This document shows, in pieces, positions 50,940 through 59,576 of a stretch of DNA of 64,000 nt. The DNA is taken from the IMG/VR virus record IMGVR_UViG_3300032770_000001, positions 186,001 through 250,000 of that record; one strand, given 5' to 3'. The notes under the pieces were generated by a model, which made no database searches, was not told the origin of the DNA, and saw only the letters and a list, made by a program, of their open reading frames with translations. A program made the translations under genes and the position numbers. Numbering within the stretch: position 1 is the stretch's first letter; each line of letters opens with the position of its first letter.

Positions 50940-51229
50940 TGGAACTGATTACAGGCATTCACAATCGTCGCGTTGCAGAGAATAAGCTGAAGGCGTTGAA
51001 GTGGAAGCTTCGGCAGTCAAAGCGCCAACAAGCACGGCTGGAGAAAGAAATCTTTCAGCTTGAAAACAAGGTTTGGGATTTGGAAGTGCGTCTGGTTAAA
51101 CCAAGCCAGATGTGTCGCAACAACTGGACAAGTGGCTATTACTGCGCCCTGAAGAAGGGGCACAAAGGCGGCTGTCAGGGGCAGGCACCGCCTCCGGTCT
51201 ATAGAAACTTCAAGCGAGTCTATGAATGA
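50936..51229 (+). CDS. hypothetical protein (coiled coil + Cys/His motif)
   Basis: GTGA overlap; CALKKGHKGGC. Confidence 0.6.
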   Translation: MMELITGIHNRRVAENKLKALKWKLRQSKRQQARLEKEIFQLENKVWDLEVRLVKPSQMCRNNWTSGYYCALKKGHKGGCQGQAPPPVYRNFKRVYE

Positions 51230-51762
51230 GCTTCTGTAGCACAATTGAACATCGTCGTAGCGGTCAATTCCTGAGCCTCGCTCTACACACGATTGCGATG
51301 GCCGACCCAATCATGCGTATCGAGGACGCTCGCTATGAGGCGCGAGAAGGTCGGAAGAAAAGTCGTCGCCCTTCGCGCAAAAACGAATCCAAGCAGTTTG
51401 ATCTCTTCCCGCTGACTAAAGAGCAGGCGGAAAGCTTCGCCGGATTCGCCAAGACCCTACGGTACTTCCTTGAGTCTTATCAGGAAGATGTCATCAAGAC
51501 CAAACCGAAGGATAACCGTAAGATGTGGGGACCGGGCGGACGGCTGCACGATCTGGAATACTGCGACTACGAGTTTTACGATTTCTGGTACCACATGATT
51601 CGTGATCTGAGTCCGGAGGTATGGGAGACGCGGGTCAAAGAGCTTGAGAAGATTGGTGAGAACAGCATCGTCGAGGACTATGAGCCGAGCATCAAGTTCC
51701 TGTACCAAATCAACGCCCGTGCCCTTTGGGAACACGAGAGCCATCGCAGAGGTTGCTTCTAA
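51226..51762 (+). CDS. hypothetical protein
   Basis: ATGA and TAATG overlaps. Confidence 0.6.
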   Translation: MSFCSTIEHRRSGQFLSLALHTIAMADPIMRIEDARYEAREGRKKSRRPSRKNESKQFDLFPLTKEQAESFAGFAKTLRYFLESYQEDVIKTKPKDNRKMWGPGGRLHDLEYCDYEFYDFWYHMIRDLSPEVWETRVKELEKIGENSIVEDYEPSIKFLYQINARALWEHESHRRGCF

Positions 51763-52445
51763 TGAATGTTCAAGAGTTTGACATGGATGTACAGGCTCTT
51801 CGGAAGAAGCACCATCTGACCGAGCAGATTCGGGTAAATCAGCGGCTCGCACAGGGCGAGTACCTTCCGATCAATGAACTTTTGATGCTGTTCGATTACG
51901 AACTCGCTGAGAAGCTGCGGAATATGGTGAAGGACAGCTTCAGGCTATTCATGGACGCTCCCGGCTCCAGTCACAACCACCAAGCATGGCAAGGTGGGTA
52001 CATCGACCACGTGACTGAGACCATGAACATCGCCATCGTTGAGTACGGAGCATTCTGCAACCTCGGTCGCTACTTTCCGTTCAGTGTCACCGATGCTCTG
52101 CTCGTTATGTTCCTCCATGATCTGGAGAAACCCTTCAAATCTCAGGGGAGCCTGAGCCGCTGCCAGTGCAAATTCGGTGCGGACTGTGTATGTCCCCTGC
52201 CCGTCAAGGCAACCAAGGAAAACCGCCGCAAATTTCGTGACGATATGATCGCGGAATATGGTATTGAACTAACAGTGGAGCAGAAGAATGCCCTGCGCTA
52301 CGTAGAGGGCATCCCGGATTCCGAGTACAAGCCGGGGGAGCGCATCATGGGCGAGTTGGCTGCCTTCTGTCACACTTGCGACATCCTGAGCGCCCGTCTC
52401 TGGCATGATTGGGGACGCGAGCGATCATGGGGGAGAGTTGAATAG
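51762..52445 (+). CDS. HD-domain phosphohydrolase (YhaM-like)
   Basis: APGSSHNHQAWQGGYIDH, FLHDLEK, HTCD. Confidence 0.8.
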   Translation: MNVQEFDMDVQALRKKHHLTEQIRVNQRLAQGEYLPINELLMLFDYELAEKLRNMVKDSFRLFMDAPGSSHNHQAWQGGYIDHVTETMNIAIVEYGAFCNLGRYFPFSVTDALLVMFLHDLEKPFKSQGSLSRCQCKFGADCVCPLPVKATKENRRKFRDDMIAEYGIELTVEQKNALRYVEGIPDSEYKPGERIMGELAAFCHTCDILSARLWHDWGRERSWGRVE

Positions 52446-52628
52446 TGTACCTGAATCTTCAGATCGGTAAGTTCAACTTCACGGTCGGTAAACCGACCAA
52501 CAAACCCGCGAAAAAGCCAATGGTTATGCAGGTTTCGCACCCTGTGATGAACGGTCGGATCGTCGATCAAGAATTTATTATCGACGATGAATCAAAGCTC
52601 CGCTACCAAAACTAAGAATAGACACACC

Positions 52629-53102
52629 ATGATTGAGATCGTCATCGACCCTAAATTCACGGGTCCGAGCATTATCGATCAGCAGTTCGTTCTTCGAAAC
52701 ATCCAAGACGACGTGATAGAGTTGCGCTGGTCGAACAAGCGTGAAGAAATCGCAGTGTTGAACCGATTTCTTGACTTGAACTTTCGCTTCTTTGTGTCCG
52801 ACGCCTTGATGCAGGAGAAGTCGGCAATCACGCTGGGGCTTCCGGTTGAATTCGAGAACAACACGATGAACGAAGCGAAATTGGCGTTAAATACGCGAAA
52901 ATCGTATGATTGGCGCAAGTTTTGTGAACAACGCTCTCACGTCTACACCCGTAATCTTTTGATCCGCATCGCCGCTGATTCTCTCCGCAAAGGGAAAGAA
53001 TCGTGTCTCGCCGCCGTCGTCGCCGACTTAGCCAAGAAGTCTGGTATTAACCTTGTAGAAGACGCAGATATTCTATTGCGACTCAAAGCCCTACAAGGAT
53101 AA
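52629..53102 (+). CDS. hypothetical protein
   Basis: ORF in chain; start uncertain. Confidence 0.6.
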   Translation: MIEIVIDPKFTGPSIIDQQFVLRNIQDDVIELRWSNKREEIAVLNRFLDLNFRFFVSDALMQEKSAITLGLPVEFENNTMNEAKLALNTRKSYDWRKFCEQRSHVYTRNLLIRIAADSLRKGKESCLAAVVADLAKKSGINLVEDADILLRLKALQG

Positions 53103-53104
53103 GC

Positions 53105-53380
53105 ATGTTTGAAGACGATGACGATGATGAGTTTCCAGCTAAATGGCTGGATAAAAAGCACTACATCCGCATCGATCCTAAGACAGGCAAACCGCAACTG
53201 GTCCGCGTAGAGCCATTCATCACGGAAGGGCAGGAATTTATTCCCTACCAAGTCAAAGTGTTCGTTGATGACACTCAGGAATTGGTCATGGGGCGCGAAG
53301 AAGCCGAGATGTACATAGCGATGACTGGATGCTCACCGCTGGAGGTCGCAGCGCAATGGAAGCACAAAAGCGAACACTGA
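53105..53380 (+). CDS. hypothetical protein
   Basis: AAGGA RBS. Confidence 0.6.
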   Translation: MFEDDDDDEFPAKWLDKKHYIRIDPKTGKPQLVRVEPFITEGQEFIPYQVKVFVDDTQELVMGREEAEMYIAMTGCSPLEVAAQWKHKSEH

Positions 53381-53991
53381 AGCACCAGTGGGTACCTGCC
53401 CATCAACTTCTTTCAACTGAGACCGGGGACTATCCGGTGTGCAAACGTTGTGGCTTCGTCCAGAACGAGAAAAACAAGGACAAACCTTGCGTCGATAAAA
53501 GACTTTCCAAGGGAATTCATGGTATTCTAAGAAAGGAACAAGGTATTCTAAGAAAGGAACAAGAGCAAATGAACGCAAAAGAAGCCAGAGCAACCGCTAC
53601 GAAGCGGGCAACAGAAATCGAAAATGCACGTCAAGAGAAAGAGCGCCGGGAAGCCGAAGCTTCCGCTCAGAAGTGGCGTGAAGAGAAAGCCAACTGGGAG
53701 AAAAATCAAATCCGCTGGATCACCGAGCGGATCGCCGAAGCGGTAAGCAAGGGTCAGCACAGCACCAGCTTCCAGATGGAAGCCAACGATGACGAGGAAC
53801 GATCCGGTGAGAAATGGTTTTGGCAAGTGACTCCGTACAAAGCTGAGATGAAGCGAGTGATGAAGCACTTCGAGGATTTGGGCTACACGCTTGAGTTCTA
53901 TGTCAAGAACCGGGAGAACGTCGATCTTTCGGACTTGAATCCCCGCGACAACTGGATCACTTACGAAACCCGCTTGAAGGTGAGTTGGTGA
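53356..53991 (+). CDS. hypothetical protein (probable second in-frame start at 53569)
   Basis: GGAGG RBS at 53341; internal AAAGGA RBS before ATG 53569. Confidence 0.55.
   Translation: MEAQKRTLKHQWVPAHQLLSTETGDYPVCKRCGFVQNEKNKDKPCVDKRLSKGIHGILRKEQGILRKEQEQMNAKEARATATKRATEIENARQEKERREAEASAQKWREEKANWEKNQIRWITERIAEAVSKGQHSTSFQMEANDDEERSGEKWFWQVTPYKAEMKRVMKHFEDLGYTLEFYVKNRENVDLSDLNPRDNWITYETRLKVSW
53521..53562 (+). repeat. perfect 21-nt tandem duplication
   Basis: GGTATTCTAAGAAAGGAACAA x2. Confidence 0.95.
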
Positions 53992-53994
53992 AAC

Positions 53995-54441
53995 GTGGTT
54001 CACCCAAGCCAGAAAAAGCGTAACCACCCGAACCACGGGCCGAACATCTACGATCCGAATTGCGAGGGCTGTCGCAAATACGGGATGTGGAAGTCGAAGG
54101 TTTGGAATCGGCATCTGCTGGACAAGGATGATCCGGCGTATCTGCCGGAAGGTCGCACGCCGGAGAACCCTCGTAGTCAAAAACGGCTTAACCCCAAGTA
54201 TGGCTATCACGCCGTCAAGATCAAGAAGGGCGTGCTGGGTGAGATCAGCAAGATTCAGGAAGAGCTTGACGAACTGAAGGACGCCGAGAACCAAGGGGTC
54301 AAAATTCTCATTGCTGTTGAGCTTTCTGACCTGTTCGGAGCCATCCGCGAGTACGCGAAAAAGTACGGGCTCAAGATGGCAGACCTGCATGACATGGCAA
54401 AATTGACGCGCAAAGCGTTTGAACAAGGACACCGGAAATGA
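53995..54441 (+). CDS. MazG-like all-alpha NTP pyrophosphatase-domain protein
   Basis: SKIQEELDEL.DA...VELSDLFGAI fits ExxE...ExxD. Confidence 0.6.
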   Translation: MVHPSQKKRNHPNHGPNIYDPNCEGCRKYGMWKSKVWNRHLLDKDDPAYLPEGRTPENPRSQKRLNPKYGYHAVKIKKGVLGEISKIQEELDELKDAENQGVKILIAVELSDLFGAIREYAKKYGLKMADLHDMAKLTRKAFEQGHRK

Positions 54442-54629
54442 ACAAAGACGACAACCCCAACATCGTGAACATCATCACTGAAGGCAACATGGTTCAGGTC
54501 GATAAAGACGGTCGAGTTCTTCTCTCCAAGGAAGACAGCAAGCGACTTAAACGTATCGAGAAGATGTTGGAAATTCTACTTGAGGGCGGCTACCCTCAGC
54601 AGTTTGAGGAGCTACGCAAACTACAATGA
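54438..54629 (+). CDS. hypothetical protein
   Basis: ATGA overlaps. Confidence 0.55.
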   Translation: MNKDDNPNIVNIITEGNMVQVDKDGRVLLSKEDSKRLKRIEKMLEILLEGGYPQQFEELRKLQ

Positions 54630-54982
54630 GCTACATGCAATGTCCAAAATGCGGCGGCTGGTTTGGTATTGTCGGGCCGCAGATTTTTCAATGCGGCTGT
54701 CCACATACACCTAAGCGGTTCTCATTCTCCGGTGTCAAACGTAAAGTCGCCATCGACGACGACATCTGGCAGTCCACACAGCAGTACGTCAAGGATCAGA
54801 TCGCAATCATGAAACGTCATGGTTCCGATCCCGGACTCACTGAGGAAGAGTTCAATGATCTGGCGTACACAGTCGCGGAGTATCCACAAACTATCCGCAA
54901 TCTGCAAAAGAAGGCTGAGGCGAAACTTGCTAACAACGTGGGTGGGACCGGAACAGTACAATCGACTCCTACGGGCGATTGA
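54626..54982 (+). CDS. hypothetical protein
   Basis: GAGGAG RBS; CPKC...CGC. Confidence 0.6.
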   Translation: MSYMQCPKCGGWFGIVGPQIFQCGCPHTPKRFSFSGVKRKVAIDDDIWQSTQQYVKDQIAIMKRHGSDPGLTEEEFNDLAYTVAEYPQTIRNLQKKAEAKLANNVGGTGTVQSTPTGD

Positions 54983-55565
54983 TTATTACGAGCGACACGG
55001 TTTCAAGTACATCAACGTGCCGTGGTGCGTCAGCGAAGAAGCGATGATGATTACTCGTCCGGAGTGGGCGAAATCGAGCATCTGCACGTTAATAGCTGGG
55101 GGTGAGCCCACGTGTCCGGTTGCATCTGCTGAACAGAGTTTTCTTCAACTCCAGATAGATGCAATCGGACGCGGCGAACGCATGGCTGGAAAGTACGTGG
55201 CGATCACGCCGTGTTTCCGAAATGAGCCTGTATTGGATGATTTGCATCAGGCGTACTTCATGAAGGTGGAATTGATCCATTGGGGTGAGACCGCCGATGG
55301 GGTTTGTTTACGAGACGTGTACGATATGGTCAACACGGCTCAGATGCTTTTGAACTGCCACGTGCCGACTATCCGTGTAGTGAACGAGGAGCCCGACCCG
55401 GTTTCGGTTGGCTATGCCTTCGACATCAATGCCAAGTCTACTGGGATCGAACTCGGCAGTTATGGTATCCGCGAATACCCGGCAGTGGGGCGGTGGGTAT
55501 ACGGCACCGGGCTGGCGGAACCGCGAATGACTTATGCCATTGAAAAAGACACGACTGTCGGCTGA
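54927..55565 (+). CDS. stand-alone class II aminoacyl-tRNA-synthetase-like catalytic domain
   Basis: GFKYINVP (motif 1-like), SAEQ, PCFRNE...H...FMKVE (motif 2), IELGS, GTGLAEPR (motif 3); start re-called at TTG behind GAGG. Confidence 0.7.
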   Translation: MLTTWVGPEQYNRLLRAIDYYERHGFKYINVPWCVSEEAMMITRPEWAKSSICTLIAGGEPTCPVASAEQSFLQLQIDAIGRGERMAGKYVAITPCFRNEPVLDDLHQAYFMKVELIHWGETADGVCLRDVYDMVNTAQMLLNCHVPTIRVVNEEPDPVSVGYAFDINAKSTGIELGSYGIREYPAVGRWVYGTGLAEPRMTYAIEKDTTVG

Positions 55566-55866
55566 AGATCGGGCACGGGAAGCTGCTCGCCGCGATCCCC
55601 GGCAGATGGCGCTTCCGCTACCAGAAGATTATTTGAAAGGGTTGATTTTTCCCACTAAATACGTTAAAACTCTTGAGGAACGGATCGAGGGTTTGCCGAA
55701 GTGGGCGCAGCGTCACATAGCAGAACTGGAGGCTAGACTTCAGAATGCTTTAGTATGTGGCAGCGTCGGTGCGGACAATGTGGCAGAGACCTCTACAAGC
55801 ACCACCTGTCTGAAATCATCCGCTGTATCTGCGGGTGGACATGGGGAGATTGATGAAACTCGGTAA
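55534..55866 (+). CDS. hypothetical protein
   Basis: Chain; LPKWAQRHIAELE. Confidence 0.55.
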   Translation: MPLKKTRLSAEDRAREAARRDPRQMALPLPEDYLKGLIFPTKYVKTLEERIEGLPKWAQRHIAELEARLQNALVCGSVGADNVAETSTSTTCLKSSAVSAGGHGEIDETR

Positions 55867-56512
55867 CTGGTATGACATGGTGCCTGTGAGTCAAATCACG
55901 CACCGTATTTTTGTCGGCGGCTACGCGCAAGCGGCACAGCTTCCCATCAACAACCCCCACAAAATCAGCGCCGTGCTCAACGTCTCGACCGAACCACCCT
56001 ACGAGAAAGACCCGAACATCGTTTACTGCCACGTCCCGTTCAATGACGGCGAGGGCATCCCCCGTAGCCAATTCGTAAAGTGTCTCGGTTTCCTCCAGTG
56101 GGCATACGAGACTGGTCACACGATCCTGATCCATTGCGCAGCCGGAATTTCCCGGTCGGTTGTCATCACGGCGTCGTTCATGGAATACGAGAAACTCATG
56201 GGCTTCGATGAGGCTCTGGACCGTATCCGCAAGTGTCGCGCTATCGCGAACCCGGCTCCGGCAGTGCAGGTATCGGCAAAGAAATTCCTCGGAGTCTGGC
56301 CTTACGATGGTTCGATGGGCTCAACTTCACAGGCCGAGCACGAGAAGGTCATCCGCGAGGCGTTCGTGTGGATGGATGCACAACGTGCGGCGGATGCCCA
56401 CACCAAGGACAACTGTCCGATGAAGATTTTCCTGATCTCCCACAGCCCTGAAGACAACACGCCCCGGCACATGATAAAATGTACATGTGACCAACTTCTC
56501 ACTGGGACGTAG
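55853..56512 (+). CDS. dual-specificity (Cys-based) phosphatase
   Basis: IHCAAGISRS (HCxxGxxR), PFNDG acid loop. Confidence 0.92.
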   Translation: MKLGNWYDMVPVSQITHRIFVGGYAQAAQLPINNPHKISAVLNVSTEPPYEKDPNIVYCHVPFNDGEGIPRSQFVKCLGFLQWAYETGHTILIHCAAGISRSVVITASFMEYEKLMGFDEALDRIRKCRAIANPAPAVQVSAKKFLGVWPYDGSMGSTSQAEHEKVIREAFVWMDAQRAADAHTKDNCPMKIFLISHSPEDNTPRHMIKCTCDQLLTGT

Positions 56513-56524
56513 TATTATCCATGT

Positions 56525-56767
56525 ATGGGCAATCTTTCGTATAAGCTGCTAGACAGCGAACAAGCCGCTTTCGAGAAATGGGCGAAAGAGCACGAAGGCT
56601 CGTGTGAGTATACGAGCAAAACCGCAGCGAATCCAGCCCATCCCAAATACTTTACGCCGACCTCTCCAGTTGAGGTCGCTTTCCGCGCAACAGGGGTTGG
56701 ACCTGTCATCCATGTTCGCTGCCTGTGCGGGGCAGAAGTTGACATTACAGATTACGAGGCATTCTAA
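56525..56767 (+). CDS. small putative metal-binding protein (paralog of 28191-28466)
   Basis: W...H...C, F..TGVG, CLCG, TDYEAF. Confidence 0.65.
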   Translation: MGNLSYKLLDSEQAAFEKWAKEHEGSCEYTSKTAANPAHPKYFTPTSPVEVAFRATGVGPVIHVRCLCGAEVDITDYEAF

Positions 56768-57468
56768 TGGCAATCCCGGTTGAAGGACAACTGATTCAGT
56801 TGATGGATTTGAACGGTATCGGTGAAGCGAACCAAGAGAAAATCTTCGCCTATCTGAATGTCGTCGCCGACAAGCACCCCGATACGGCGCAGCACTCCAT
56901 GCGCGTTGGCGTGCTGGCTGCACGCATCGCCCGTGTGCAGGCGATTCCCGGCGTCACTCCCAAAATGCTGCTCTGGGCTGGCTGCCTGCATGACGTGGGC
57001 AAGGTCGTGGTAGACCTTGAAACTCTCAATAAAGTTGAGAAATTCACCAAGAAGGACATGAAGAAAATGGAGCCGCACGTTATCATGGGATGGCAGATGC
57101 TCGATAAACTTCATGATTACACCGCCGCCATCATCGTGCGTCACCACCAGTTCGGCCCGAAACCGTATCCCACGAAATTGCCGGAACTCCCGGATTGGCT
57201 CGAACCCAAGAAAGCCCTCATCAACACGGCGGCACGTCAGCTTGCGCTGGCGGACTACTATGACGCCCTGATGAACCGCAAGAACGACAAGAACAAGGCG
57301 AAGCCGAAGAAGGGTGAGAAGGTCGCAAAAGAACTCAACGGCGAAGAGAAGCGCAACCTGTACTTCAAGGACAACGCCGATCAGAGCCGCCTCATCATGC
57401 TGCTCGAACAGCAGGGTGTGCTCAAGTTCCCCGACGCCTATCAAGACACGGTTGTGCAGGTGCTCTGA
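56767..57468 (+). CDS. HD-GYP-like phosphodiesterase
   Basis: TAQHSMRV, LHDVGK, H...G, HHQ...PYP, LADYYDAL. Confidence 0.8.
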   Translation: MAIPVEGQLIQLMDLNGIGEANQEKIFAYLNVVADKHPDTAQHSMRVGVLAARIARVQAIPGVTPKMLLWAGCLHDVGKVVVDLETLNKVEKFTKKDMKKMEPHVIMGWQMLDKLHDYTAAIIVRHHQFGPKPYPTKLPELPDWLEPKKALINTAARQLALADYYDALMNRKNDKNKAKPKKGEKVAKELNGEEKRNLYFKDNADQSRLIMLLEQQGVLKFPDAYQDTVVQVL

Positions 57469-57719
57469 TGCTTGTCGAACTTCATTGGTACATGCCGTGG
57501 TATCCAATCGGAGACCCCGCGTTTCCGGAACACCGTCCATTTTCCATTGCGCCCGATCAAGTGGCGGACGTATCCGTTCTTCCCCCCTATGCTTACACTT
57601 TCGTTAACGGCGGATCAGGCAGTTATCCTGAAGGCACGAATATCACGATGAAGAATGGTAACAAGTTCGAGGCTAAGGAAAAGTACGCTGAGGTCATGAA
57701 GCTGCTGAGGGGTGAATAG
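57468..57719 (+). CDS. hypothetical protein
   Basis: TGATG overlap. Confidence 0.6.
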   Translation: MLVELHWYMPWYPIGDPAFPEHRPFSIAPDQVADVSVLPPYAYTFVNGGSGSYPEGTNITMKNGNKFEAKEKYAEVMKLLRGE

Positions 57720-58000
57720 TGCTTGCCGAGCTAATCCAAGAAGTCGAAGGATATAAGCGGGGGCAAGAGTACAAGATCAACTACCTAGCCCGGATGCTTG
57801 CCGCCTATGACGATAAAACGTGGGTGCGCCTAAGACGGGATCGCCGGAGAACGTACCTTCGGGCAGCGACCACCCTGTACCACAACTGGGGGGAGTTTGA
57901 GGCGTGGTTGCAGGCCAACAAATTTCCCGGAAAATCTGTGATTTCCGACCCCTTAGTAGAGGGCACACATGGGCAAGAAGGTCGCAGCGACCGAGGTTAA
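57719..58000 (+). CDS. hypothetical protein
   Basis: GAGGGG RBS before GTG. Confidence 0.55.
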   Translation: MLAELIQEVEGYKRGQEYKINYLARMLAAYDDKTWVRLRRDRRRTYLRAATTLYHNWGEFEAWLQANKFPGKSVISDPLVEGTHGQEGRSDRG

Positions 58001-58454
58001 AGCACCCGGTACATATCAAAAGCACCTGAAATACACCATATTCCTCGCCGGGGCCATCGACCAAGGCAGCGCCGTGGACTGGCAGAAAAAGGTGGCTCGT
58101 GCCCTCGACGACTTGGATGTCCTCGTTCTGAACCCCCGCCGTGACGATTGGGACGCCTCTTGGGAGCAGTGCCAAACCTGTGAACCCTTCCGCAGTCAAG
58201 TCATGTGGGAAATTCAGGCGCAGGAAGATTCCGACATGAACATCTTCGTGTTCACCAAGGATTCAAAAGCTCCTATCACTTTTTTCGAATTGGGAGCTTT
58301 CGGAACACGCAAGGAAGCCATCGTTTGTGCTGAGGAGGGTTTCTACCGTCAGGCGAACCTCGACATTTACTGCGAACACTTCGGTATCGCCATGTACCAC
58401 AACCTTGACGAAATGATTGCCGACCTCCATGATGTATTAGAGCAGAGGGCTTAA
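57969..58454 (+). CDS. nucleoside 2-deoxyribosyltransferase-like protein
   Basis: IFLAGAI, DWQ, NPRR, WE...D, PITFFELG. Confidence 0.85.
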   Translation: MGKKVAATEVKAPGTYQKHLKYTIFLAGAIDQGSAVDWQKKVARALDDLDVLVLNPRRDDWDASWEQCQTCEPFRSQVMWEIQAQEDSDMNIFVFTKDSKAPITFFELGAFGTRKEAIVCAEEGFYRQANLDIYCEHFGIAMYHNLDEMIADLHDVLEQRA

Positions 58455-59197
58455 TGGCAGGTCAGGACGTTTTCGTTCTCACATCTATCTTGGAAAACGG
58501 GGAGAATCGCCCCGTCGCCGTCACCACCGACGAGCACGTTGCTAATGAGTGGGTACGGGCTGGCAACGATAACGACTGGATTTCCTTCACGCTCGACGAT
58601 TTGAGCACCACCGGACTCGCCAAAGAAGTCACCCCCTTTAAGCCGAAGCAGAAGATGCCTGCTGAGGAAGCCATTAAGAACATCAATGACCAACTGGTGA
58701 AACAGAATCAAGAGCTTCAGGAAGTCGTCCAGTTGCTTCAGAAACGCATTCAGATGTACGAAAAACGTATGGGCTACAAATCGAGTGCCGAAAACCCGCT
58801 GTTCGAGAAAAGCGCGGGGGCACCGGGTTCCCACCTGTACCACGGCACGTCCGAGAAAGCGTACAAAGCAATCATCCGCAATGACTACAAAATGACGGCA
58901 CCGAGCTACTGGGCTACGCTAGAGGTTGCCGAGTATTACGCCGAGGTCGCGGCAGAAGAAGATGGCAGCAACATCAAAGTCGTAATCGAGATGCCAATAG
59001 GTTTGTTCAGTTCCGACCATTTAGCCCCGGATGACAACTCCATCGCCGAGCCCCTGACCTACACGTTGGGGATGACTGAGACCGACTTGTACGATCAATG
59101 GCAAAGCAGCGATGGCACGTGGGAAGACAGCCTTGAAATTTATGGCAGCGTGAAGTACAACGCCGTCGTCGATATCAGACAGGGGAACCTTGTATGA
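58454..59197 (+). CDS. two-part protein: N-terminal domain + coiled coil, C-terminal ADP-ribosyltransferase-like domain
   Basis: LYHGTS...I...Y.AT..VAEYYA...VVIE pattern after a linker. Confidence 0.55.
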   Translation: MAGQDVFVLTSILENGENRPVAVTTDEHVANEWVRAGNDNDWISFTLDDLSTTGLAKEVTPFKPKQKMPAEEAIKNINDQLVKQNQELQEVVQLLQKRIQMYEKRMGYKSSAENPLFEKSAGAPGSHLYHGTSEKAYKAIIRNDYKMTAPSYWATLEVAEYYAEVAAEEDGSNIKVVIEMPIGLFSSDHLAPDDNSIAEPLTYTLGMTETDLYDQWQSSDGTWEDSLEIYGSVKYNAVVDIRQGNLV

Positions 59198-59385
59198 CTC
59201 GTGAAGAAGAGTTACGGGCGATTTTCTTTCCCGTCATGTACGAATGGTACGAGTGGAAGGAAGACCCGACCATTTTTGTACCCGGCACCGATTTCAACCG
59301 GATGTTGGATGAACTGAGAGAACGGTACAAGGTGACGCCGGAAGAGTGGGAAAAGCTGGAAATTCAATACTGGGAGACACTGTGA
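59194..59385 (+). CDS. hypothetical protein
   Basis: ATGA overlap, AGGGG RBS. Confidence 0.55.
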   Translation: MTREEELRAIFFPVMYEWYEWKEDPTIFVPGTDFNRMLDELRERYKVTPEEWEKLEIQYWETL

Positions 59386-59576
59386 TGGGGTTACGTGATG
59401 ATGATCCGAGCATTTACGAAGATCGTGCGTTGTTAGAGTGGGCACGGCAAGCACCGAGACCACGCGGTTACGATGACGGACCGATGTCCGAGGAAGAGTC
59501 CGCCGCCCGTGACCATGCCGTCCGCGAGCACGCGAAGCGCAAACCTCACGTTCGCCGCTACGCCGACGAGGACTGA
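59385..59576 (+). CDS. hypothetical protein
   Basis: TGATG overlap, GGAG RBS. Confidence 0.55.
   Translation: MGLRDDDPSIYEDRALLEWARQAPRPRGYDDGPMSEEESAARDHAVREHAKRKPHVRRYADED

Follow-up and report, generated by a model that had tools for sequence, protein, structure and literature searches.

The stretch described here, positions 53,995 to 55,565 of a 64,000-nucleotide piece of virus DNA that was analysed as a whole (the window), holds four co-directional genes that overlap or abut one another. Two of them concern us most: a gene for a 212-aa protein built like the catalytic core of a class II aminoacyl-tRNA synthetase (aaRS), called here the ligase, and a gene for a protein with ExxE and ExxD motifs, called the partner, which stands two small genes upstream (Table 1). 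The initial annotation, made from the letters alone, had described this order of ExxE/ExxD protein, two small genes and ligase, and all four lie where it placed them; the protein of about 212 aa with class II motifs 2 and 3 is likewise there, and it carries motif 1 too. The window corresponds to bases 186001-250000 of a source genome of 455,708 bp, that of a jumbo phage. The only runs that contain the stretch are DNA runs of wetland metagenomes, none of them recorded as RNA, and no near-identical DNA was found among reference phages.

The open reading frame (ORF) of the ligase opens at 54819, and its likeliest start is a TTG with GAAGG..GAGG ahead of it; a GTG at 54942 is the alternative. Public gene calls give the same 212-aa protein. 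The ligase gene overlaps the 118-aa ORF before it by 56 nt. Another genetic code was considered and rejected: the genome has two tRNA(CUA), yet all genes of the stretch end at TGA and read cleanly under table 11. A promoter and terminator scan of 51000-59500 returned site counts equal to those of shuffled sequence. As the genes overlap or abut and promoter- and terminator-like sites are no commoner than in shuffled sequence, the stretch looks like the interior of one long operon.

Fold and active sites of the two proteins

The ligase appears to be a bacterial-type seryl-tRNA synthetase (SerRS) pared to its catalytic core. Its AlphaFold2 (AF2) model (pLDDT 94.8, pTM 0.91) places the entire chain in one class II core, and comparison of the model with known structures finds the antiparallel beta-sheet flanked by helices that defines this fold. 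Foldseek returned at least 500 class II matches at E <= 1e-3 (best 6.9e-10), with SerRS ranked first. VIA, an aligner independent of Foldseek, gave Z scores from 20.2 to 13 against SerRS, HisRS, ProRS, PylRS, PheRS and others over about 200 of the 212 residues. Here too bacterial-type SerRS came first (Z 20.2-18.7, with about 206 of 212 residues aligned, to positions 156-398 of the T. thermophilus enzyme), followed at lower scores by HisRS and HisZ (Z 15-18.4) and by the methanogen-type SerRS 2cim (Z 14.7). When a profile of 41 ligase homologues was searched against all solved structures, the top 19 matches were all SerRS (best E 1.4e-6) and the next family stood at E 0.34; hhalign of the ligase profile with E. 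coli SerRS gave a probability of 92% and E 6.8e-7. All this points to descent from bacterial-type SerRS and not from LysRS or AspRS. The Pfam scan found class II matches below threshold only (tRNA-synt_2b, 13.7 bits versus a cut-off of 29.3), and the sole NCBIfam match, TIGR00414 (serS), reached 19 bits versus a cut-off of 301.65, which leaves the ligase outside the full serS family.

The class II signature motifs 1 to 3 are all present, and the residues by which SerRS contacts serine and Mg-ATP could all be placed by alignment to the E. coli enzyme (Table 1) and are conserved throughout the family. Across 98 homologues with a mean identity of 38%, residues S67, E69, F111, K113, E115, D166, E175, S178 and T194 are invariant, R98 and R200 are kept in 97/98 and P32 in 96/98. 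In known SerRS structures these residues hold the amino and hydroxyl groups of serine, the adenine, the phosphates and the Mg ions. From their conservation we infer that the ligase adenylates an amino acid and that this amino acid is serine.

What has been cut away is equally distinctive. The ligase begins about 8 residues ahead of the motif-1 helix (residues 8-23), and the N-terminal coiled-coil arm of SerRS (PF02403, Seryl_tRNA_N) is matched in 13 of 14 control genomes but nowhere in the 455,708 bp of the source genome; PF00587 (tRNA-synt_2b) finds nothing elsewhere in the source genome. Between the motif-2 glutamate and the histidine that follows there are 6 residues (PVLDDL, acidic) versus 14 in E. 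coli SerRS; the region ahead of motif 3 is shorter by about 17 residues and the C-terminal tail by about 21. Because the motif-2 loop is short and acidic and the arm is missing, these features argue against charging of tRNA(Ser). The absence of an anticodon-binding domain, claimed in the initial annotation, holds, since the whole chain folds as a single class II core with no room for a tRNA-binding domain. A SerRS core without the SerRS tRNA arm is the more exact wording, because SerRS never had an anticodon-binding domain.

A scan of PHROGs assigns the ligase to phrog_4806 (E 1.7e-40), which is labelled "histidyl tRNA synthetase". We tried and rejected a HisRS or HisZ identity: no HisRS chain appears at E <= 10 in the profile search of solved structures, where 19 SerRS do, HisRS and HisZ are lower structural matches only (against a Z of 20 for SerRS), and 212 aa leave no further domain. 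The name looks wrong and is misleading; it is probably the structural likeness to HisZ that lies behind it, and phrog_4806 should not be counted as evidence for a phage-encoded tRNA synthetase. The family is large, as a word search with the ligase retrieved over 1000 clusters of proteins 190-240 aa long, many of them encoded on contigs of 100-660 kb, and its natural sizes run from about 180 to 212 aa. One member, gp133 of the Caulobacter phage CcrColossus (L001:3737-4591), bears an N-terminal domain like the C-terminal domain of the RNA polymerase alpha subunit (alpha-CTD; PF03118, E 3.1e-6, above cut-off). GenBank calls it 'RNA polymerase alpha subunit C-terminal domain protein' and RefSeq 'histidyl tRNA synthetase'; the partner of this phage is a separate upstream gene, gp132.

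Only the last 80 residues of the 148-aa partner are conserved, and it is this core that travels with the ligase in other phages; the extension before it (residues 1 to about 66, with one CxxC) is lineage-specific. The core carries the motifs G-Y71-H72, K86, E89-E90-x-x-E93, E109-x-x-D112 and a C-terminal T..AF..G.R147. In an alignment of 59 relatives, extended to 94 sequences, the Y, H, K, EE..E, E..D, T, F and R are invariant in 93-94 of 94. The model of the core is a helical bundle (pLDDT 93.1) in which E89, E90, E93, E109 and D112, the residues of the metal motif, and the preceding K86 sit on predicted helices 18-34 and 37-56 (core numbering), and the Y-H segment is non-helical.

The relationship of this core to the PRA-PH and MazG enzymes was sought with family models and with structures. 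Pfam PRA-PH is matched by 48 of the 59 relatives at E <= 0.1 (best E 4.6e-5) and MazG by 6. The partner ORF of locus L021 exceeds the PRA-PH gathering score; the window copy has 17.6-18.1 bits versus a cut-off of 21.3. The nearest Atlas clusters are viral PRA-PH, MazG and dATP-dGTP_PPHyd proteins (scores 0.91-0.96). The top Foldseek matches are all PRA-PH or MazG as well, at 17-33% identity and weak E values of 0.36-2; the VIA Z of about 6 is no higher than for other helical hairpins and so lies in the helical background, and hhalign with E. coli MazG alone was insignificant. Taking the motifs and family matches together, we accept the partner as a putative distant, catalytically equipped member of the all-alpha nucleoside triphosphate (NTP) pyrophosphohydrolase superfamily, nearest to PRA-PH, and phrog_6408 can be named as the PRA-PH-like partner of phrog_4806. 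That it might be a split-off SerRS arm was ruled out by the lack of any PF02403 signal together with its PRA-PH-type motifs.

An antisense ORF of 294 aa crosses the partner gene, and similar antisense ORFs cover neighbouring genes; they are composition artefacts. Longest-ORF calling drops the real 80-aa partner behind such an ORF, and the same cause may hide the partner in automated annotation. In T4-like Acinetobacter phages the core is N-terminal in a longer protein, as in gp220 of vB_AbaM_PhT2 ('Phi92_gp197', 207 aa, L002:3345-3968). The C-terminal extension of about 125 residues in these phages belongs to no Pfam family, and some records call the gene MazG-like.

Table 1. Positions of the features in the window and correspondence of ligase residues to E. 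coli SerRS
Feature	Position	Strand	Remarks
Partner gene (ExxE/ExxD protein), 148 aa	53995..54441	+	GTG start (alternative ATG 54085), TGA stop
Conserved partner core, residues 69-148 (80 aa)	54199..54438	+	phrog_6408, E 1.1e-28
Intervening ORF, 63 aa	54438..54629	+	Outside conserved module
Intervening ORF, 118 aa, N-terminal zinc-ribbon-like CPKC...CGC	54626..54982	+	Lineage-specific, outside conserved module
Ligase gene (putative minimal SerRS-derived class II ligase), 212 aa, P0001	54927..55565	+	TTG start, TGA stop
ORF of 294 aa across partner gene	53548-54432	-	Antisense
ORF of 110 aa over ligase 3' end	55534-55866	+	DUF7239, phrog_3236
239-aa protein, HD-like H..HD signature	51726-52445	+	No Pfam match; near module
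Dual-specificity phosphatase	55835-56512	+	DSPc, E 3.6e-17; near module
HD-domain hydrolase	56767-57468	+	E 2.8e-14; near module
Nucleoside 2-deoxyribosyltransferase-like	57969-58454	+	PF15891, E 2.7e-30; near module
Motif 1	ligase G25-F-K-Y-I-N-V-P32		E. coli SerRS G189..P196
TxE-type element	ligase S67-A-E69		E. coli SerRS T237-A-E239
Motif 2	ligase F97-R98-N-E100...F111		R98/E100 = E. coli SerRS R268/E270
FxKxE	ligase F111-x-K113-x-E115		E. coli SerRS F287-x-K289-x-E291
D	ligase D166		E. coli SerRS D342
ExxS	ligase E175/S178		E. coli SerRS E355/S358
Ser/Thr before motif 3	ligase T194		E. coli SerRS S391
Motif 3	ligase G193-T-G-L-A-E-P-R200		R200 = E. coli SerRS R397

Linkage, fusion and distribution of the pair

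Linkage was assessed by profile searches in 98 loci: 79 viral contigs, 3 reference phages, 15 contigs of metagenome-assembled genomes (MAGs) and the window. In 94 of them the partner core shares the strand of the ligase and is no more than 1.5 kb from it, being directly adjacent in 73, 150-1500 nt away in 17 and in the same ORF in 4. It is upstream of the ligase in 60 loci and downstream in 34, and this order is clade-specific (87 of 94 nearest neighbours agree), so that adjacency has outlived rearrangement. In the window the two genes are separated by the two lineage-specific small ORFs, as they are in the closest relatives, L004 and L005. When the neighbours in the window were compared by tblastn with 82 related loci, the partner core alone recurred (81/82). 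The collection of reference phages tells the same, with the ligase in 276 records and the partner in 277; by genus of host the tallies of ligase and partner are 112/112 for Escherichia, 61/59 for Acinetobacter, 13/13 for Caulobacter, 10/10 for Pectobacterium, 8/8 for Cronobacter, 8/8 for Microcystis and 7/7 for Brevundimonas. With the E values against phrog_4806 and phrog_6408, the more than 1000 clusters and the 276 and 277 phage records, the observation is far beyond chance.

A query with a natural fusion retrieved about 40 protein clusters of 262-302 aa that span both domains. The spacer from the motif-3 arginine to the G-Y-H of the partner is always 10 or 11 residues in the 21 clusters in which both motifs were located; the fusions thus have no flexible linker, and such a fixed junction suggests one composite enzyme. 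The predicted complex of ligase and partner core scored 0.01, which has no weight for or against binding. The initial annotation had proposed to look for linkage or fusion in other phages, and had made its case depend on a class II fold and conserved linkage. The computational halves of this were run, and a SerRS-like core and near-universal pairing in both gene orders, with recurrent fusions, were seen. Given fold and linkage, its proposal of a truncated class II paralogue working with a hydrolase in an uncharacterised pathway now stands more firmly.

The family is essentially confined to phages. A scan of 185,579 prokaryotic species, with one genome each, found 16 ligase loci, 13 of them with the partner, and all are MAG contigs except for one contig of 775 bp labelled Lysobacteraceae bacterium JHOS43; isolate bacterial genomes are essentially without it. 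Besides the source phage, hundreds of large phages from many lineages carry the module; it is present in about 0.5% of reference phage records, on hosts from Escherichia to Microcystis. Among the carriers are phi92-like coliphages, including muut and PaulScherrer (MZ501100.1), and the phi92-like phages of the BASEL collection infect E. coli K-12. A 181-aa homologue of the ligase without partner was met in a Pirellulaceae MAG (L085:1686-3425) and in a Verrucomicrobiia MAG (L087:2609-6634), in both directly downstream of a sulfotransferase and in the latter upstream of a Trp-halogenase-family enzyme (E 2e-95). The ascamycin cluster holds a sulfotransferase, AlaRS-like proteins and FAD halogenases (PMC4257720), and the gene content around these two homologues, which resembles small-molecule biosynthesis, recalls it. 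As a lead only, there may be cellular cousins of the ligase core that act on small nucleoside-type molecules.

No third gene is conserved with the module. All-against-all clustering of ORFs within 3 kb on either side in 73 dereplicated loci gave 7/73 for the best third family (NADAR), and a Pfam tally of 116 flanking proteins peaked at 4 (zinc ribbon). Of the two ORFs that separate partner and ligase in the window, the 63-aa one has no homologue in related loci and no match in Pfam or PHROGs, and the 118-aa one has a homologue only in L004. Cys-rich or zinc-ribbon ORFs stand by the module in 21 of 94 loci versus 17% of background windows, and this lack of enrichment rules out a zinc-ribbon ORF or extension as a hidden third part. 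The run of nucleotide-related genes around the module in the window is shared only with L004 and L005 (the 239-aa protein also with L007 and L062) and is no property of the module in general. Elsewhere the neighbours include ribonucleotide reductase (RNR), dCMP deaminase, dihydrofolate reductase (DHFR) and NADAR genes, and the surroundings are mostly those of DNA and nucleotide metabolism.

Several further observations concern the surroundings. For the 110-aa ORF over the 3' end of the ligase gene the family matches are DUF7239 (E 4.9e-5, slightly below cut-off) and phrog_3236, and related loci hold no homologue of it. In Escherichia phage muut the gene after the ligase (about 145 aa, L003:4571-5005) is annotated 'tRNA amidotransferase' and is followed by aerobic and anaerobic RNR genes. 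ARAGORN finds a tmRNA and 61 tRNA genes in five clusters in the source genome, outside the window (e.g. C1:17291-31271, 90163-94370, 128647-139594 and 270927-290590); four of the tRNAs are tRNA-Ser isoacceptors, two, labelled 'Pyl', are amber suppressors with anticodon CUA, and one was called with a 4-base anticodon.

Possible reactions of the module

Our best explanation, which we put forward tentatively, is a phage-specific and obligate module of two enzymes, a tRNA-independent ligase that forms seryl-adenylate (Ser-AMP) and an NTP pyrophosphohydrolase, probably with a substrate of nucleotide type. The ligase would bind serine and ATP-Mg and convert them to the adenylate; lacking the tRNA arm and most of the motif-2 loop, it would not be a normal tRNA synthetase. 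The partner would bind an NTP-like molecule through Mg held by K/EExxE/ExxD and cut the bond between the alpha and beta phosphates. Ligase and 80-aa partner would form one composite enzyme, probably a2b2, which in many phages is a single polypeptide, and both activities would serve one substrate stream, for which a small and universal acceptor of nucleotide type seems most likely. The seryl (or adenylyl) group of Ser-AMP might be passed to a nucleotide that the partner supplies as the monophosphate, or else the partner might trim the triphosphate of the product. More specifically, the module could make a serine-nucleotide conjugate or another nucleotide derived from Ser-AMP that acts as a phage metabolite, inhibitor or counter-defence molecule, a proposal that we consider possible but somewhat unlikely. 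If true, infection would involve amino-acid-nucleotide chemistry of a new class, and among natural aaRS-type catalysts whose active site is complete the ligase would be the smallest.

Several points weigh against this explanation. The absence of a conserved third gene removes the usual genomic clue to the acceptor. The structural support for the partner fold is weak by itself, with a helical hairpin, Foldseek E of about 0.4 and VIA Z of about 6. A SerRS core still has the pocket that takes up the terminal adenosine of tRNA, and without its arm SerRS can charge tRNA to a weak extent; the source genome has its 61 tRNA genes, and some related loci hold tRNA-related genes, e.g. for a CCA-adding enzyme. 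The alpha-CTD-like, helix-hairpin-helix fusion of CcrColossus hints at a nucleic-acid or protein target and not at a free nucleotide. Finally, a sensor that only binds its ligands would conserve ligand-binding residues too.

The alternative that survives best, although we regard it as unlikely, is directed at RNA 3' ends. A mini-SerRS blind to tRNA identity would serylate the CCA ends of tRNAs or of tRNA-like phage RNA, and the partner would remove a blocking pyro- or triphosphate from the RNA or clear a nucleotide by-product; the purpose could be tRNA repair, protection, or counter-defence against toxins that target tRNA ends. The SerRS origin with the entire catalytic pocket retained suits this, as do the tmRNA and numerous tRNA genes of the source phage, four of them for tRNA-Ser. 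So do genes for a tRNA nucleotidyltransferase-like and a possibly PTH2-like protein, seen no more than 6 kb away in 6-8 of 81 loci (named by eye, not by family scan), the 'tRNA amidotransferase' annotation beside the ligase in muut, and the fusion to a nucleic-acid-binding alpha-CTD-like domain in CcrColossus. Yet no tRNA arm is found in cis or genome-wide, and the motif-2 loop, which in SerRS contacts the acceptor stem, is cut to 6 mostly acidic residues. If tRNAs were serylated indiscriminately, mistranslation would follow, and PRA-PH and MazG enzymes act on nucleoside 5'-triphosphates, not on RNA ends. The tRNA-related neighbours are rare and not conserved, and the tRNA-gene-rich phages T4 and T5 are not known to carry the module.

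Aminoacylation of a protein in the style of EpmA acting on EF-P, which we hold to be quite unlikely, would attach serine to a lysine, a hydroxyl or the N-terminus of a host or phage protein, with the partner as adaptor or as acceptor through its invariant G-Y-H segment or its invariant lysine. Protein modification by truncated class II paralogues is known, the structure of GenX/EpmA matches our model (Z 13.4), and in the fusions the non-helical Y-H segment, 10-11 residues past the motif-3 arginine, could reach the active site. But the lysine and acidic residues of the partner form a canonical metal and phosphate site of NTP pyrophosphohydrolases, as expected of an enzyme rather than a passive acceptor; the conserved residues of the ligase are those of SerRS, with no resemblance to the EpmA/LysRS lineage; and no conserved third protein is linked.

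It is improbable, in our estimate, that the module deals in dinucleoside polyphosphates or alarmones. In that case a second NTP would attack Ser-AMP to give Ap4N, the partner would hydrolyse Ap4N, (p)ppGpp or another alarmone, and a stress signal or RNA 5'-capping would be rewired. Production of Ap4A from the aminoacyl-adenylate is known for class II aaRS, SerRS among them, and cleavage of NTP-like pyrophosphate bonds for MazG-type enzymes; ligase and partner both retain an intact active site, and a target universal among hosts would suit the wide host range. Rigid fusion of a synthase to the hydrolase of its own product would, on the other hand, result in a futile cycle, there is no sequence mark of a second NTP site, and the strict 1:1 co-occurrence in both directions is better suited to sequential steps or one composite site. 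Of the dinucleotide signal with a paired hydrolase suggested in the initial annotation, the hydrolase is indeed linked, whereas a synthase joined to the hydrolase of its own signal is a poor fit to fixed-junction fusions.

A non-catalytic sensor comparable to HisZ or to the HisRS-like domain of GCN2, in which the SerRS-like domain would do no more than bind a ligand (serine, ATP or uncharged tRNA) and turn the pyrophosphohydrolase on or off, strikes us as decidedly improbable. Class II paralogues do serve as regulatory subunits, HisZ structures match the model (Z 17-18), HisZ works in the same pathway as the PRA-PH enzyme HisE, and allostery would agree with the fixed geometry of the fusions. 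The catalytic residues are gone from known sensor paralogues, though, while the motif-2 and motif-3 arginines and both Mg ligands of the ligase are invariant or kept in 97/98 over deep divergence, and its kinship in sequence is with SerRS, not HisRS or HisZ.

Least credible of all is hypermodification of DNA in strict analogy to MazZ-PurZ, with dNTP converted to dNMP by the partner, serine added to base or sugar by the ligase and the product entering phage DNA: the type of gene pair (NTP pyrophosphohydrolase and ATP-dependent amino-acid ligase) and the position among nucleotide-metabolism genes fit, but the module brings with it no conserved kinase, polymerase or other enzyme for later steps, it is spread over phage groups that are unrelated and differ in their known DNA chemistry, and its phi92-like carriers belong to a group, the Vequintavirinae and relatives, described as 'exceptionally susceptible' to restriction-modification systems (PMC8594841). 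This susceptibility of module-bearing coliphages also weakens the look at phage DNA nucleosides suggested in the initial annotation.

Comparison with known systems

In the literature searched, including a comparative paper on jumbo phages (PMC7824862), we found no description of the ligase-partner pair. An aaRS core of urzyme-like size that is obligatorily coupled to a PRA-PH-type enzyme appears to be new, a combination not described for any aaRS paralogue. Earlier truncated paralogues (EpmA, AsnA, HisZ, the amino acid:[carrier protein] ligases and Glu-Q-RS) each brought unexpected chemistry, and the ligase is widespread and mislabelled as histidyl-tRNA synthetase. Strictly paired with an NTP pyrophosphohydrolase and repeatedly fused to it, the ligase is part of a testable two-protein system for which no function has been described, and since the module is present in phages of E. 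coli K-12 (the phi92-like BASEL phages, muut), genetics and biochemistry are straightforward. At 180-212 aa the ligase is near the engineered class II "urzymes" in size with all catalytic residues kept, and thus offers a natural test of the minimal aaRS.

With the catalytic domain of SerRS (EC 6.1.1.11) the ligase shares motifs 1-3, the TxE-type element (SAE in the ligase), HQ..FxKVE, ExxS and G(T/S)GLAxxR. SerRS, though, has about 430 aa and a coiled-coil arm, whereas the ligase is armless, always paired with an NTP pyrophosphohydrolase and confined to phages. The amino acid:[carrier protein] ligases (Bll0957/Atu2573) are also truncated SerRS homologues (3mey, Z 16.2); they need no tRNA to activate an amino acid, which they hand on to an acceptor other than tRNA. 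They come from the zinc-dependent SerRS of methanogen type, have about 300 aa and adjoin a carrier-protein gene. The ligase does not belong with them: bacterial-type SerRS scores Z 20 versus 16.2 for 3mey and 14.7 for methanogen-type 2cim, and no carrier-protein family was found among the neighbours of 66-73 dereplicated loci.

In EpmA/PoxA (GenX, 3a5y, Z 13.4) and AsnA (11as, Z 13.7) a class II core, likewise with no anticodon-binding domain, adenylates an amino acid destined for something other than tRNA, and the initial annotation had drawn this comparison. As an analogy between truncated class II cores it is apt; as a lineage it fails, as the ligase seems to derive from bacterial-type SerRS (class IIa) and these enzymes from LysRS or AspRS (class IIb). 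They are also larger, at about 325-330 aa, the ligase being a third smaller, and its obligate partner is another one. In the HisZ-HisG-HisE system a class II aaRS paralogue and a PRA-PH pyrophosphohydrolase act in one pathway on an ATP-derived nucleotide, and the Z of HisZ to the ligase is 17-18. HisZ has lost the catalytic residues, which the ligase keeps, and the latter is SerRS-like by sequence and has no HisG; E. coli, which hosts the phages of 112 carrier records, has the long form of HisG and does without HisZ.

A precedent for a nucleoside as acceptor is YadB/Glu-Q-RS, an aaRS paralogue without anticodon-binding domain. This truncated GluRS activates glutamate free of tRNA and glutamylates a hydroxyl of queuosine in tRNA-Asp. 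Unlike the ligase, it is of class I (Rossmann fold), cellular and stand-alone, works on a base borne by tRNA and has no NTP pyrophosphohydrolase as partner.

The closest analogue at the level of the system is MazZ-PurZ (with DatZ) of Z-genome phages, where the gene of an all-alpha NTP pyrophosphohydrolase neighbours that of an enzyme which links amino acid and nucleotide at the expense of ATP. There the pyrophosphohydrolase feeds the amino-acid ligase, PurZ, which is a homologue of adenylosuccinate synthetase and uses aspartate, and the product enters DNA. Our module is not a member of that system, the ligase being an aaRS and not PurA-like; in contrast to MazZ-PurZ it occurs as fusions, there is no sign of DNA modification and no dNTPase like DatZ is conserved alongside, so that the likeness between the two is one of organisation only.

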